From: Zancudomyces culisetae HAW-14-8
Lineage: Eukaryota; Fungi; Kickxellomycota
Direction of reading: 5' to 3'
NCBI GenBank assembly: GCA_052426225.1
Contig: JBNJNM010000021.1
Span: 124,001-188,000 of the forward strand
DNA: 64,000 nucleotides
The translations under genes and the position numbers were made by a program. The notes beneath the pieces are model-generated. The model was not told where the DNA came from, made no database searches, and saw nothing but the letters and a program-made list of their open reading frames with translations. Below, in pieces: positions 20,846-29,392 of the stretch (position 1 is the stretch's first letter; the number at the start of each line of letters is the position of its first letter).

Positions 20846-23797
20846 ATGCAAAAATTTACTTTTCTTAATTTTCTAAAAAGCAAAGTAAATCGACAAAACA
20901 GCAAGAGAACATTCCAAAGCAGCTCTATAAACACAATGAAATGGGGAATCCAGATAATCAATCCGCCCAGTAATAATGCGAGGGTTAGCAGTATTATGAT
21001 GTTGATGGAAAAGACTCGATACATGATAAACTGTGGAGAGGGTGTCCAAAGAATATGTATGGAAAAGGGGGTAAAATTGATAAAACTACACAACATATTC
21101 TTCACTAGAACGAGCTGGGAGAATATAGCGGGTGTACCGGGAATGTTATTAACTCTGGCAAATGCAGGGGTGAGAAAAGTGGACTTGCATGGGGGGGAAA
21201 ATTTGATGCATGGGTTGGCAACAACTAGGCATTTTATTCTACAAAATACTGCAACAATCCGGTGTAACGAGTTTGAATATACTGAGAAAAAGGAATCGGG
21301 TATGACTGAAAGTGGACTTGCTAGTTGTAAAGCGTTTGATAATGAAGAAATCAGGGTGATACCAGTCCATATATACCCAGTGGAAAGTGTAGAGGAGGAA
21401 GAAGATATAATATCAGGAAGGATTAAAAGGCAGAGTAATGGAATGTATTTGCGTGACAAGATGAAACGTGAAGAAATTCTAAAGGATATGTATTTTGAAC
21501 TGAGCAAAAGCAGCGCTGAAGCATGTGATGGTGGATCAATACATGTGGAAAGTAGCAGTTACAGGGGCCAAGGCTACGATGGAAATGGAAGTATTGGCAA
21601 AAGTAAAAATAAGGCGCATGATAGTGGACTTGGTGACAGAGAGGCGAAGAATGTTGTAAAAAGGGCCAAAAATGCGAGCAACAGTGGTGGGCAAGGGAGG
21701 GTTGTAAACACAATCGGGCACGGCAGCGCAGAGCACAAGATTAGGCAGCACAATAACTCGAATAAGGTATTGCCACCGACTCAACACAGCAATCAAACGA
21801 CGTGTTATGTAGTGGTGGGGCCACAACCGGCTGGTAAATTTGATCCGGTAAAAGCGAGGGAGTATGGGTTGAAACCAGGACCACAGTATAAGGAATTAGT
21901 AGCTGGAAAGAGTGTTTTCAACGAAGAGGGGAAAGAAATCAAGCCGGAAATGGTGGTCGGAAAAAAGAAACCAAGATCAGTATTTTTGGTAGTGGAATGC
22001 CATGATTCAAGATATATTGAGTCAATAGTACGCAAAGAGGAGTTTTTAAAATATCATATTAAGACTGTAGGAAATGGGAAAGGAGAAAATGCAGAAAGTG
22101 ATGAGGAGTTGAAGTTAATAATCCATTTGCTGGATGATGTCAAGGTACTAGATAACAGCAAATATTTAGAATGGATAAAGGGATTTGGTCATGGGGTGAA
22201 GCATATGATCTGTAATAGAGAGATTGCAATGGAAGAGTGTAGTACTGAGCCATTTGAAAGATTTTACAATCTTCAAAAGAAGCTGGGAAAGATAAATAAC
22301 AGGGTATTCAGAGTACCAGAGGAGAGCAATAAGAAAAAGGGATCAAAACCAATCAAGCACAGAAACATTAATGGCATTGAGTTTCTGGTGGCGGACTACA
22401 ATTTAAAGATTGATTTTGAGCCTAAATTTGCGATTGATACGACTTTAATGTCGCAGCCTGTCCAACAGACAAATAATGTTGCCGAGGAAAATAGCTTTAA
22501 TGATGATGCTGGAGTGGGCGCCACTGAAATGTTGATGGATAAGAATGAAAATTTTATTATTTCCACACTTGGAACCGGATCTTCAATCCCATCGTGTCAT
22601 AGAAATGTGTCATCAAACTTGGTATACATGAAGGGTAGCGATAGCTATATACTACTGGATTGTGGGGAGGGAACTTCAGGTCAGATAAAAAGACTGGTAA
22701 GTAATGATATGCTAGCTGGTAGTGGTGTAGATGGGGATGAAGCTCTAGCAGGCAGAAGATTTAACGAAAAGGAATATGCCGAGATAATTAGAAAGTTGAA
22801 AATGTTGTATATTTCGCACATGCATGCGGACCACCACTTAGGAACAGTGCAAATACTACTGGATTATCTCAAATATAGCAATGCACACAATGCCCAAAAA
22901 GATGCAGCGTTGGTAGTTGTTGGGCCACTCAAGTTTTACAAGTTTCTCAAAGAAATAGAAACAATGCTGGATGTAGGTTTTGGAGACAAAATTTTGTTTA
23001 TAAACAACCACGATTTGCTAATGGCAAACTCAGTGTCACAGTCTAGTGCCATAATAGCTCACCGCCACCGATGGATATATGATAAATTATTGAAAGATCT
23101 GAATTTAAAGGAACTGAAGACGTGTCTAGCCAACCACTGCTTACACTCCTACTGTTTGCTTATTTCAGCTCACTCATCACCATCATCACACTCATCATCT
23201 TCCTCGGAAATGATGGTGGAGGCGAACAATAACAACACCTTTCAACTTGTGTATAGTGGTGATACTAGACCAACTAGACGAATTGTAGATTTAGTTGTAT
23301 CAGGTGGTAACAACAATGATGTGACCTTACTTCACGAAGCCACGATGTATGACGACATGCTCGGTGATGCCATTGCAAAGAAACATTCCACATGTTCCGA
23401 GGCCCTTGCTGTGGCCATATCAATGGGCGCGAAACGCCTTCTCCTGACTCACTTTAGCCAGCGATATATTGGTATTCCTCGTTCGTTTAACGTGGAAATG
23501 GTCCTAAACACTATTCTTTCTGCTGGTAGTGCAGATTCTCCATCGATCAAGGTCTCTGAATATTTGCAGCACAAACTCTCTGACCCATCTGGAAACAATG
23601 ACATAAACGATATTAAGAGCGAACACTTGGGACTATCTCCCAAGTCATATGTCGAAAAATACTTGGAATCTCGATACCCTGCGTTTGCGTTCGATTTGGC
23701 TATTTATAGCCCGTCTGATATCGAAGAGTTTGTTCGTCTTGCACCCGCAATATATGATGCAGCTAGTGACGAAGTTAACCCTGATTCTACTGTATAG
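20846..23797 (+). CDS. TRZ1: Long-form tRNase Z (ELAC2/Trz1)
   Basis: NCGEGVQR pseudo-motif, GP flexible arm GKFDPVKAREYGLKPGP, LGTGSSIPS, LLDCGEGT, SHMHADHHLG, YSGDTRP, HEAT, HST and LTHFSQRY motifs. Confidence 0.95.
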   Translation: MQKFTFLNFLKSKVNRQNSKRTFQSSSINTMKWGIQIINPPSNNARVSSIMMLMEKTRYMINCGEGVQRICMEKGVKLIKLHNIFFTRTSWENIAGVPGMLLTLANAGVRKVDLHGGENLMHGLATTRHFILQNTATIRCNEFEYTEKKESGMTESGLASCKAFDNEEIRVIPVHIYPVESVEEEEDIISGRIKRQSNGMYLRDKMKREEILKDMYFELSKSSAEACDGGSIHVESSSYRGQGYDGNGSIGKSKNKAHDSGLGDREAKNVVKRAKNASNSGGQGRVVNTIGHGSAEHKIRQHNNSNKVLPPTQHSNQTTCYVVVGPQPAGKFDPVKAREYGLKPGPQYKELVAGKSVFNEEGKEIKPEMVVGKKKPRSVFLVVECHDSRYIESIVRKEEFLKYHIKTVGNGKGENAESDEELKLIIHLLDDVKVLDNSKYLEWIKGFGHGVKHMICNREIAMEECSTEPFERFYNLQKKLGKINNRVFRVPEESNKKKGSKPIKHRNINGIEFLVADYNLKIDFEPKFAIDTTLMSQPVQQTNNVAEENSFNDDAGVGATEMLMDKNENFIISTLGTGSSIPSCHRNVSSNLVYMKGSDSYILLDCGEGTSGQIKRLVSNDMLAGSGVDGDEALAGRRFNEKEYAEIIRKLKMLYISHMHADHHLGTVQILLDYLKYSNAHNAQKDAALVVVGPLKFYKFLKEIETMLDVGFGDKILFINNHDLLMANSVSQSSAIIAHRHRWIYDKLLKDLNLKELKTCLANHCLHSYCLLISAHSSPSSHSSSSSEMMVEANNNNTFQLVYSGDTRPTRRIVDLVVSGGNNNDVTLLHEATMYDDMLGDAIAKKHSTCSEALAVAISMGAKRLLLTHFSQRYIGIPRSFNVEMVLNTILSAGSADSPSIKVSEYLQHKLSDPSGNNDINDIKSEHLGLSPKSYVEKYLESRYPAFAFDLAIYSPSDIEEFVRLAPAIYDAASDEVNPDSTV

Positions 23798-23950
23798 AGC
23801 CTAGAGCCTTTTTTTTTTACATTTCCTTTAATTTTAATGATATAAATAAAATCTGGAAAAAAAATAGCTAAATGGATTTGATATGTTAGAGTAAATGAAA
23901 AAAATAAAATTGAAATGACTATAAACAGTATAGAAAATTATATACGTAGA

Positions 23951-25270
23951 CTACTGCAGCGCCATTTGAAGCTTTTGGGATTGTTCTTTACCTAGATCTC
24001 TATCAAACATTTCTGCTTCACGTTTTCTCCAGGCAACATCCCTGTACTCAACTACGTTGTCTACAAAGTCTCGAACCATATATTCCGTATCCAGAGGACC
24101 GCCCATCGCCTCTGGATGGAATTGTACAGAGTAGTATGGCAAGTACTTGTGTTTGATGCCCTCCACGCTCCCATCGTTCGCATTGACAAAGCTGACTTGC
24201 CAATCCTCTGGAACGTTTTTGTCACTAAGTGCGTACCCGTGGTTCTGTGAGGTAATAACACACCGCCCAGTTTCAGTGTCTATCACTGGCTGGTTATGCC
24301 CACGATTTCCAAATGGCAATTTGTACACTTCGAATCCTGCTGCCATCCCCAGAACTTGGTTTCCCATACATATCCCAAAGATTGGGCGCTGGTAAAGTTT
24401 TATTGCTTGGCGGAGGTGCTGCACAGTCTCAACACAATGGACAGGTGATCCTGGCCCATTTGATATAAATAGACCGTCAAACTTGTCCAGATGTGCAACA
24501 AAGTCGTAATCCCACGGAAGTACTGTCACTCTTGCTCCTCTTTTGCATAGCAATCGAACAATATTGTTCTTTGCCCCACAATCAATCAATGCCACATTGA
24601 TTTTACCACCAGGATTGTATACGCGAGGTGTCTTTATCGAAACTTGCTCCACCAGGTTCATACTTGTTGGATCTCTCCACTGAACCTCTGCTTGGATGTC
24701 CATAACATCTTGTCCTATGTTTATTGCCCCAAGAGTTGATCCTTGACCTCTAAGCAAATGTACCACTGCTCGTGTATCCACACCTGATATTCCAGGAACA
24801 CCAGATCGTTGACACCATTCAGACAGCGATTCCACCGCATTCCAATGCGAATACTTCTTTGCTATGTCACTAACAACTACTCCTGCACACTGGATTTTCT
24901 CTGATTCAAAGTGCTTTAGCAGGCCAAAATCATCCCGCGTTCTCTTTGGCACTCCATAATTACCTACAAGAGGCTGGGTAAACACTAGAATTTGGCCCTT
25001 ATATGAAGGATCAGTCATTGATTCTGGATATCCAACCAATGATGTTGTAAATACTGCCTCCCCAATACATGCTGTGTTTGCACCAAATGATACCCCTGTA
25101 AATTGTTCACCTGTTTTCAACTGGAAGTGCGCCTTCTCCTCGCCATCTTGAACAGGGAAAACCGCTTGTAGTTTTCCGGTAGCCATTCTTCTCATGTTCA
25201 ATCCTGTTGCTTTGAATGCTGGGCTGAGACCCCTGATCTTTGAAAATGTTTTTACAAGATTTAGACTCAT
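23951..25270 (-). CDS. CPA1: Arginine-specific carbamoyl-phosphate synthetase small chain with mitochondrial presequence
   Basis: GEAVFTTSLVGYPESMTDPSY, SNGPG, GICMG (catalytic Cys), GNRGHNQP, SQNHGY, VQFHPEA. The N-terminus is basic and lacks acidic residues. Confidence 0.96.
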   Translation of the reverse strand: MSLNLVKTFSKIRGLSPAFKATGLNMRRMATGKLQAVFPVQDGEEKAHFQLKTGEQFTGVSFGANTACIGEAVFTTSLVGYPESMTDPSYKGQILVFTQPLVGNYGVPKRTRDDFGLLKHFESEKIQCAGVVVSDIAKKYSHWNAVESLSEWCQRSGVPGISGVDTRAVVHLLRGQGSTLGAINIGQDVMDIQAEVQWRDPTSMNLVEQVSIKTPRVYNPGGKINVALIDCGAKNNIVRLLCKRGARVTVLPWDYDFVAHLDKFDGLFISNGPGSPVHCVETVQHLRQAIKLYQRPIFGICMGNQVLGMAAGFEVYKLPFGNRGHNQPVIDTETGRCVITSQNHGYALSDKNVPEDWQVSFVNANDGSVEGIKHKYLPYYSVQFHPEAMGGPLDTEYMVRDFVDNVVEYRDVAWRKREAEMFDRDLGKEQSQKLQMALQ

Positions 25271-25429
25271 TTTGATAATTTTTTTTAAATTGTTTTGTAT
25301 GTACGTAGTTTTTGTTTTTTCTATTTGTTTGTGATAATTTTAATATAATTTTTTCCGAAAACTTTTTTTATTTTCGTTTCTCTGCCGCTTATGTGAGTTT
25401 AACAGATTGTTCACCCCTTTTTATCTCGT

Positions 25430-25507
25430 TCAGTTATTTTTTCCTGTTTTCCAAATCTGACAACTCAAATAATCTGCTGCGCACTCTTCTGATGTATGGT
25501 AGTACAT
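25430..25507 (-). promoter_or_regulatory. uORF encoding an arginine attenuator peptide (AAP) homolog, MYYHTSEECAADYLSCQIWKTGKNN
   Basis: 25 codons plus TGA, ending ~160 nt before the CPA1 ATG. DYLSCQIWKT aligns with S. cerevisiae DYISDHIWKT and N. crassa DYLSDHLWRA. D12, Y13 and W19 are at the same positions as in N. crassa. Confidence 0.88.
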
Positions 25508-26034
25508 ATAGAAAGGCTATATGAATAGTTTCCCGTTGGGTTTAATTTAATAATGTGATTATTAAGTATTGTATCTGTTGTTAATTACACCTTAGCAAGA
25601 TTGCAAAAAGCTTGTAAATAAGTTTAAAAGGAAAAAGGAAACACTATGGTGATATCAAAACGCAACTTTTTAAAAATAAAAATAAAAAAACTAAAAAATT
25701 TTTTTTTCATTAACCCTGCACTGTAGTATAGCTTTAACTTGGCCCTGAATTGAAATTCGTTCTTTCAGAAATCCATAGAAGGGCTAAATTTGTCATTATT
25801 ACCATCCAGATTAGCTATCTGAATGATTTGCTGCCATCTTGCTTAATTTTTTTATCTCCTTTCTGAACAGCTTTTGGATATATTTTATAATTTTCGCTAA
25901 AACCAACCATACAAACCAATACTGTTGTCTGATAACAATCTTGATTCTCCTTTTTTTTTTGTAAAATTTAAACGGATAATTGAATTATTTTCACAAAAGC
26001 TTTTTGGACTTTGCAATTCGACCACCTATTTATT

Positions 26035-26739
26035 TGCTCATTTATCAACTCACGCCACAAATAAGAGTTCAAGGGTTTGTTGGTATTTCTATCCATTTAC
26101 CAACTTGCAGTTTACATAAACCAAGTTCGAGGCAGTAGTTCAATAATCCTCGCAATTTCTTCTAGAGCTGGCCTATAGAATCTTTCATTTTCCAATTCAG
26201 TTCATTTGATTCTGATTGTTAAACTGTTTGGGTTGTAGCAATCAAGTATATTCCAGATTTCATATCCAGGTTCCAAATCGCAGGTTCGCTAACCAAATAA
26301 GTCTACTGAGATGGATACATTAGTGAAAGACTCTATACACCAACTTTAAGCTGTAAAGCTAGGTTAACACTTCGCTACCACCAACCACCTTCATGTTAAT
26401 GAATGCAGATTAAGCTCGTTAAATGAGGTGTGCAGGTTTTATTTCTATGTTGGTTGGTTGTAAAAGTAAATATATTGGTACAAATCTGAATATAAACTTT
26501 GAAATACCGACAATTGTATGACCCTTATGAATGTATTTTATAGACCCAACATAATAATGAGATTACAGTAATATCAATATAAGGGTTTACTCGAGTTGTG
26601 CACTGGGTATATCTAATGGTTGTGATAATCAAAGGCCACCTGCAAGAACCAGCCTATATTAAAAGAAGTGTTTTAAAAACAATGATTATTTATCGAGATA
26701 CGCAAAACCCCCCCCAAAAAATAACAAACTTTTATGAAC
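26035..26739 (-). repeat. ~700-bp dispersed repeat, copy B (inverted relative to 6394-7098)
   Basis: Reverse-complement match to 6394-7098. Confidence 0.95.
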
Positions 26740-29218
26740 ACAGCGGTTATAATATAGAACAAATAAGACTAGACTGTAGTTTAACAAAGATAAACATTTC
26801 ATCATATAACACGAGTACGCTCTGTAACAACATAGAAATATATACAAAATTTTTGGGTCAAAAATCACGTTTATGAGACTATACTTTCAATTATGGCTTG
26901 TAAATTAGGCGATTTTAGTGATGTTTAGTGCTATAAAAATATTTTTGACAAAACGAAAAGGTATATAGAGATCACTTTTAAACCATTGTTCTTTATTTAT
27001 TGTTAAATCAAAACATACTTAATATACCTTGTGTGGTACTACTCTGATTAAAATAAAATTTATGTTTTAGTGCTTAGAAGAGGTTTAAATCCATTACATA
27101 AATACATATGGAGTTATTTCTCTTTTCTTTCTTGTTATATTTTAGAGGCGGGATTACTATCCCTTTGAAACTATTCCATGTATTCATTCACAAAAAATAA
27201 CACGAGGTTATGTTCATGCAAAATACTTGCCTCTCATTTTATTTGGGTTTATTCTAAAGTATTTCTTACCTATTAGTATTCTCCAAATTCAGAAAGCAGT
27301 TAAAAAACCACTTCTCTTATGAGTGCAACATACAAATCCATCTTGATAAGATAGATTTACATATTTGCCATTTTTCACATCAGAATAATAATGCATCGTA
27401 CAGCCAAAAGTTGAAACCTCAACGTAACCCAACTAATCAAATATACAACAAATCGAAAATAAGGGTGTACTGTTAAACTATCTCAACCAAAAAAGATTTT
27501 TTTTTAGAAGCCGCATTACCAGTTTTACCATATATTATAAGGGCGTATAGCATGGTCTTTGTTTAAAGTGTAAGATAAGGGTACTACAAATGAAACACAA
27601 CTGCAATATCATTTGAACCAATCGTAAAAACATCTCCGGAGTACAACTAACATCCATATCTGTCACATCGGAAGCTTTTGTCCAGACCGCTCTCATGCAT
27701 ATCACAAAATTAGATATACTCCCTGTTACGGGAGAGTACTGTGGTGCGGTGTTTCTGATAGCCATAGTCCTTAGTATGCGCATAATTCTTGATTTTTTCA
27801 ATATTATAATCTTTTATTCATTATCGTGCTGAAACTTAGTAAAAAATCTGATGTTTCAAAAATTAGCTACTCTTTGACCTTGTACAGCTAAAAGTACTAT
27901 ACACGTCATTTTAAATATATAGACACCCAATTAGCGCCATAAACTCCACTATCAATAAGGTTGATAGATTATCGAAAAGTGGTGGGGTATGTTTTTTTAA
28001 TTTTAGAGAAGTTATTAAACTCAAGTTAAAATTTTGTTGCTTTACAAACATTTGCTGGCTGATCGAAATATAGATGCACATTCCAATGCTTTACGTTATT
28101 ATCCCCGTAAATCTAGTCCCAGGGTTACATTCATTTTTGTACATTGGAGCTCTTTGTCGCAACCTAGATTTCTTATTATATTTAATAGAACTTTTTTAAG
28201 AAAAAACAAGTTTTTTATTGAACATGTATTAACTATACCACTGGACTAAACATACTATGGTGCTTTGTTGATAGCTGCTAGTCGGTTGATTGAAACGATA
28301 CCTGGAAAATGCATTAAAACTCCCCTTTTTTTTATAACTTAGGTGGGGCAAGGGTTAAGACTTTGAAATATACACTATACAAAAAATATGTAAATATAAG
28401 TACATCGTTAGAAACAATCCGTTTTCTGCTTCCTTGCAAATGTACACTGAACACGTTAAATATGTTAAATCTTTCTAAAAAAAAGCAGCTGAAAAAATTT
28501 CTATTTAATGTATATTTTTTCCTTTAAGCTAATACATAACTTGATGTTATTTTTCAGAAATTACTGGTTTTAATTGATTTTTTTCATAGAACAAATGTAC
28601 AATTGATGCACCATCATTATTAGTGATTGTGATGAAAATGACATTAACCTGATAGTGACGGGAGCAAAAATGCTGCATACTCGACATATTTTTATGAAAC
28701 GTTTTGTTTGGTGTGTAAAGAAGCTATATCTCTAACTCGTTTTGAATTCCTTGCCCTATTATTCTGTCTCCGCATGTTGATAAACCCTGGTATGTTTTAA
28801 TGTTTATTAATGTCCACTCTACAAAAAGTAGTAAAATAAAACCGCTCACTGAGCGGAATTTTTTGTTTTGTCTGATTTCTACTGATCGTTCCATTATGAC
28901 CTTGCACCATTTTAATTCTATCATTCACTCAAATTTTGCGAAAAGCACTCTTTAGACCAAATTTCAATGAAATAACGGTTTGGATTGTAACCTAGTAAAA
29001 ATGGGGAAAAAAATGTTCTTTATTTACATAATAACGCTTAGTTTAAAATAATATACGATACGATACATGTTATTTTGAGAGCACATTACAGCAAAATAGC
29101 TACCAAAGTTGAAAGTATTGTGTTTTTAGAAGATACGTTGTATTTGTGGTGGATTGATATAACTCAACTTAAGCGTTTGCACTCTCAAATACGAGTAATA
29201 TATGCGCTTGCAAAAAAG

Positions 29219-29226
29219 TATAAATA
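29219..29226 (+). promoter_or_regulatory. TATA box of the 29393 gene (identical box at 33333-33340 for its paralog)
   Basis: TATAAATA lies ~170 nt upstream of the ATG and is conserved in both duplicated promoters. Confidence 0.55.
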
Positions 29227-29392
29227 GGCCATCATCGACGTCACTACTTAACAGCATAAAGCTTCACAAGTATACTCTACTCTGACGTTTATTCATTACT
29301 ACAATAGCAATAAAGACAAGTAAATTATATTTCAGCAGACCAGCTTAAACTAAATTGTATATCAATAGAGCCGATACAAGCAACATTTAAAA

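Follow-up and report, generated by a model that had tools for sequence, protein, structure and literature searches.

A predicted arginine attenuator peptide with a cysteine at position 16 upstream of CPA1 in Zancudomyces culisetae

Few eukaryotic peptides sense a small molecule while still nascent in the ribosome, and the arginine attenuator peptide (AAP) is one of them. Its minimal active core comprises residues 9-20; alanine scanning reportedly singled out positions 12, 13, 14 and 19, and D12, Y13 and W19 are the residues reported to be absolutely conserved. Known AAPs come from ascomycetes and Cryptococcus (PMC7049704), and many fungi are described as conserving the peptide (PMC11550727). 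At high arginine, the nascent AAP stalls the ribosome at the stop codon of its upstream open reading frame (uORF), so that translation of the main ORF is blocked and NMD is possible, while at low arginine CPA1 is made through leaky scanning (PMC11550727). The D12N mutation abolishes the arginine response, and D12 and W19 touch the tunnel (PMC7038982, PMC3299997).

The AAP of Neurospora crassa arg-2 (24 aa; PDB 2XL1; PF08252) is likewise encoded by a uORF ahead of the CPS-A small subunit gene and shares D12, Y13, L14, S15 and W19 with the peptide described here in identical numbering, but has D16-H17, L18 and R20 where the latter has C16-Q17, I18 and K20 (compared over residues 10-23). The 25-aa AAP of Saccharomyces cerevisiae CPA1 (YOR302W) shares the D-Y-x-S-x-x-I-W-K-T core (gBlock, PMC8370653 supplement) and the inefficient uORF start context (PMC7969011), whereas its register is shifted by one residue, its first ten residues are unrelated and it has a D-H pair. 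Furthermore, a 33-aa uORF of Toxoplasma gondii ApiAT1 confers arginine-responsive repression that needs the D12 equivalent; its peptide has a D-Y-L...V-W-K core with Ile/Ala at positions 16/17, and is thus also without Asp16/His17, and carries an Asp at position 15, but it controls an arginine transporter, not CPA1, and is probably convergent according to the authors (PMC8370653). No paper on an AAP of Harpellales was found in the literature searched, and zygomycete or chytrid sequences may be listed in Hood 2007 and Spevak 2010. Since an AAP ahead of a fungal CPA1 is expected by specialists, the present finding extends a known system and overturns nothing.

The CPA1 locus and its upstream reading frame

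The following features were annotated on the minus strand of the window, which is the whole 64,000-nucleotide stretch of DNA analysed here:

23951..25270, minus strand: CPA1/arg-2 orthologue, carbamoyl-phosphate synthetase small subunit, 439 aa (domains, homology)
25271..25429, minus strand: uORF-CPA1 spacer, 159 nt, ATG-free and A-rich (sequence)
25430..25507, minus strand: predicted AAP uORF, 25 codons plus TGA, intronless (reading frame, profile search)
25448..25474, minus strand: putative AAP core, codons 12-20, D12 Y13 L14 S15 C16 Q17 I18 W19 K20 (alignment)
25460..25462, minus strand: codon 16, TGT (Cys), two bases from GAT; Asp in relatives, GAT or GAC where codons were printed
25487..25507, minus strand: N-terminal M-Y-x-H-x-x-E motif, codons 1-7 (invariant in the early-diverging fungal AAPs collected)
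25504..25513, minus strand: uORF start codon in a weak context, U at -3 and U at +4 (context comparison)

The uORF, which runs from an ATG at 25507 to a TGA ending at 25430, encodes exactly the 25-aa peptide of the original prediction, and the distance from its stop codon to the CPA1 ATG at 25270, given there as about 160 nt, was measured as 159 nt. Its start is the last ATG ahead of CPA1, and the next ATG further upstream lies 203 nt beyond it, as read on the near-identical locus of a second assembly, GCA_001969505.1. On the plus strand of the same stretch, translation is interrupted by a stop codon. The second assembly, which we take to be Zancudomyces culisetae as well (Harpellales, a gut fungus of mosquito larvae), has the same uORF and an identical CPA1 protein in a locus identical to the window at 1948 of 1950 positions; therefore, C16 and Q17 represent real bases. 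Sequencing error as the source of C16 was ruled out by the agreement of these two assemblies, which may be from the same or very close strains. Between uORF codon 1 and the main ATG, predicted RNA folding was no stronger than that of shuffled sequences (z = -0.29), and the leader matched no RNA-structure element or Rfam family. A bacterial promoter scan, whose model is bacterial while the host is a fungus, stayed at chance level.

The protein encoded by the downstream gene has CPSase_sm_chain and GATase domains and most closely resembles proteins of Furculomyces and Smittium (63-72%). The genome contains a single stand-alone gene for the small subunit, and a CAD-like frame of 2516 codons lies apart from it; the downstream gene is therefore the arginine-specific CPA1. 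Its basic, acid-free N-terminus suggests mitochondrial import. No second CPA1 or second AAP was found elsewhere in the genome, and the arginine pathway is intact, with CPA2-like, OTC and argininosuccinate synthase genes present. As well, the CPA2-like large-subunit frame (1231 codons) occurs in two near-identical copies (3230/3240) on different contigs (C6 and C12; L039 and L040), which reflect either a recent duplication or assembly redundancy.

CPA1 lies tail-to-tail with TRZ1 (tRNase Z) at 20846-25270 of the window, an arrangement conserved in Furculomyces, S. culicis and S. megazygosporum as well as in one of the S. mucronatum copies. The approximately 3.9 kb upstream of the uORF (25508-29392) hold no ORF longer than 92 aa and no Rfam match; Furculomyces and S. 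simulii have a divergent SYO1-like gene upstream, but none is evident in this interval.

AAP identity and conservation in early-diverging fungi

Among 11 CPA1 loci of early-diverging fungi fetched by protein homology alone, 10 carry the uORF, whose start is the last upstream ATG or nearly so. They include Harpellales (Furculomyces/S. angustum, S. culicis, S. mucronatum, S. megazygosporum and S. simulii) as well as Coemansia reversa, Dimargaris, Rhizopus, Ramicandelaber and the chytrid Polychytrium. A DNA pattern with M1, Y2, H4, E7, D12, Y13 and Q17 fixed and positions 15 and 16 free added six metagenome contigs, with five distinct peptides and CPA1 downstream in five of the six; the other seven of the 13 pattern matches, without CPA1 or the AAP C-terminus, were dropped as chance. 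The uORFs of these relatives have 24-34 codons and their peptides are 38-52% identical to the window peptide, with which they share M1, Y2, H4, E7, D12 and Y13, mostly Q17, W19 and K20, and a weak start, but all of them retain Asp16.

M1, Y2, H4, E7, D12 and Y13 are invariant across the 15 peptides of relatives. The D-Y and W residues, whose conservation in CPA1 leaders of relatives had been proposed as a check, are thus constant at positions 12 and 13, but W19 is replaced by Phe in Polychytrium only. The original prediction had described the core as atypical for D16C and H17Q. Gln17 is present in 14 of 15 relatives (five of which were chosen by a pattern that requires it) and in nine of the 10 homology-found peptides, Ramicandelaber having His, and Q17 is therefore the normal early-diverging state. 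By contrast, Asp16 is invariant in the same 15 peptides and in those of S. cerevisiae and N. crassa, so that, among the sequences compared, D16C alone is private to the species. The N-terminus, which had been called unrelated, is unlike that of yeast, yet M1, Y2, H4 and E7 are conserved from the chytrid to Harpellales. The N-terminus of the AAP is dispensable in Neurospora. The H4 and E7 codons vary synonymously across relatives although the residues of the M-Y-x-H-x-x-E motif are invariant.

A profile built from 11 uORFs of relatives, with the window peptide excluded, found the window peptide in the 27-Mb genome with E = 4.0e-8 (next match, E = 1.4). Of the 949 open stretches of 21 codons that start with ATG in the window, the peptide scored highest (67, next 16, z = 10). 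When the window peptide was included, the family profile had a single match among 177,635 PDB sequences, the N. crassa AAP 2XL1 (E = 0.037), which aligned residues 10-23 on 10-23 in exact register and so confirmed the placement of D12, Y13 and W19 in N. crassa numbering. The window peptide alone gave only a chance match against the PDB, and it had no match to PF08252 (Leader_CPA1) in either the Pfam scan or a search of its own genome, remaining below the curated cut-off of 18.5 bits that marks family membership. Nine of the 10 orthologue uORFs match PF08252 in register with 13-22.5 bits, and three of them reach or exceed the cut-off; the tie of the window peptide to this model runs through these orthologues. 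The model is insensitive for the window peptide, and the miss is no evidence against AAP identity. As a whole, the early-diverging form, M-Y-x-H-x-x-E ... D-Y-I-x-D-Q-V-W-K, is only partly caught by the Pfam model.

The uORF is short, lies on the same strand directly 5' of the gene for the arginine-specific CPS small subunit, carries D12, Y13 and W19 in register in a core that ends a few codons before the stop, and encodes a peptide conserved across orthologous loci. Judged by where it lies, by its core and its start context and by its orthology, it is well supported as a fungal AAP orthologue, as had been predicted; it is a real and mostly ordinary example with one unusual residue, and its response to arginine is likely. 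The locus and its relatives indicate that Zoopagomycota, Mucoromycota and a chytrid have all retained the switch.

In Dimargaris, Rhizopus and a Mortierella-like contig (L015, L016 and L022), the uORF is split by a shared phase-1 GT-AG intron within codon 18, which is absent from Harpellales, Coemansia, Ramicandelaber and Polychytrium. The three intron-split peptides were read by joining two exons, and the search alignments hold uninterrupted uORFs only. Contigs L021 and L025 carry uORF and CPA1 together without this intron (compare L022 and L016, respectively), which suggests that they represent spliced mRNAs of these relatives whose leaders include the uORF. That the window uORF is a chance ORF or lies outside the mRNA is extremely unlikely, considering these apparently spliced contigs, the conserved position and the genome-wide E value of the profile match (4e-8).

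Start contexts and the proposed arginine switch

The uORF start has a pyrimidine at -3 in all 16 contexts compared (U in 15, against a background of 28%, and C in Polychytrium), although these are related sequences and not independent. The main CPA1 starts have a purine at -3 in 10 of 10 tabulated cases, and the window CPA1, with an A at -3, has a strong context. As judged by the -3 rule only, a weak uORF start is thus followed by a stronger main start, and this anatomy fits leaky scanning with arginine-dependent stalling.

According to this scheme, most scanning ribosomes would pass over the uORF ATG, whose context is weak, and begin translation at the CPA1 ATG in its strong context, while some would translate the uORF. 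At high arginine, the nascent peptide, with D12, Y13, L14 and W19 in contact with the exit tunnel, would arrest the ribosome on the uORF stop codon, and the arrested ribosome would block scanning and reduce CPA1 synthesis, possibly through NMD too. The place of the uORF in the mRNA leader, its translation and arginine-dependent stalling are likely from what is known of the AAP family. With the ORF, its orthology, its conservation, the selection described below, the start contexts and the intact pathway observed, we consider a working arginine attenuator switch to be the probable reading of this locus, in which the species would tolerate its private D16C change, with a possible effect on the strength or the threshold of the response.

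Sequence change and selection on the Zancudomyces branch

The CPA1 four-fold sites differ by 0.68-0.81 from those of other Harpellales, which is near saturation, and the leader DNA showed no alignment above background with other Harpellales. In the uORF, 10 conserved residues are still in place, and 4-7 of their codons differ synonymously in each pairwise comparison. Because neighbouring silent sites are saturated and the conserved residues are kept, the uORF is considered to be under purifying selection on this branch. In a neutral simulation under a simple model, started from the Furculomyces sequence, all 10 residues were kept with a frequency of 1.3e-3 at 0.25 substitutions/site, 1e-5 at 0.5 and 0/200,000 at 1.0; this result excludes neutrality over a long period but leaves room for a recent relaxation.

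The window uORF has changed faster than those of its relatives: nine or ten of its 20 compared residues differ from those of other Harpellales, which differ among themselves at 3-6, and its family score of 67 is near the bottom of the family range (66-87). The core changes among Harpellales, I14L, D16C and V18I, all fall on the Zancudomyces branch (rough P = 0.017 versus CPA1 branch lengths, post hoc). Two of the three lead to residues that functional AAPs carry, namely L14 (N. crassa) and I18 (S. cerevisiae).

This concentration of change, together with the invariance of Asp16 elsewhere, could point to a weakened or recently relaxed attenuator, namely a translated AAP orthologue in which D16C, K8E and N9C have largely removed arginine sensing, and whose remainder acts as a constant mild brake or is an element early in decay. 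An older D16N allele of N. crassa, which reportedly impairs regulation, would agree with such weakening, and the AAP has been lost once in the order. Smittium mucronatum has two sister CPA1 copies, one of which (L010) retains the AAP, while the second (L014:2830-2900, beside TRZ1) has an alignable AAP relic with no ATG, two stops and D12 lost, at a four-fold distance of only 0.32. The L014 duplicate evolves faster than its sister L010 (branch 0.15 vs 0.021) and seems to have escaped arginine feedback. The window uORF, in sequence, is unlike this relic, a natural control for decay: its frame, 25-codon length, ATG and weak context are intact, as are D12, Y13 and W19 and M1, Y2, H4 and E7, and it precedes the sole CPA1 copy in the genome. 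Moreover, its other changes reach residues found in relatives (C9, A11 and I18 in Rhizopus), and no stop or frameshift has arisen so far, though only long-standing neutrality is excluded by the simulation. Hence, we regard loss of most arginine sensing as unlikely, if still worth weighing.

The Toxoplasma peptide responds to arginine without Asp16, and Asp16 is thus not strictly required in an AAP-like peptide; by this analogy, D16C probably adjusts the switch rather than abolishing it, although Asp15 of the Toxoplasma peptide may substitute for Asp16. It is rather doubtful that the loss of Asp16 with K8E and N9C has changed the arginine threshold or the ligand range, with selection retaining the stall. 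Still less expected is a retuned sensor, whose stall is kept under selection while its ligand range or threshold has changed (e.g., to other basic amino acids, ornithine or citrulline) and whose acidic side chain has shifted from position 16 to position 8; we hold this to be very unlikely. Selection does persist while an invariant residue has been changed by two bases, and the window peptide still has three acidic residues (E7, E8 and D12, as against E7, D12 and D16 otherwise), but the regulated gene is unchanged and the minimal active core does not include position 8. If true, a retuned AAP would be a natural probe of arginine recognition by peptide and ribosome, for which no high-resolution account was found in the literature searched.

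Along with D16C in a probably working switch, the loci compared here offer further natural variants for structure-function work, namely the decayed Smittium paralogue copy and W19F in Polychytrium. In the AAP of Polychytrium aggregatum (L042:1703-1777), Phe replaces W19 while D16 and Q17 are kept, and this substitution is arguably a stronger natural variant than D16C.
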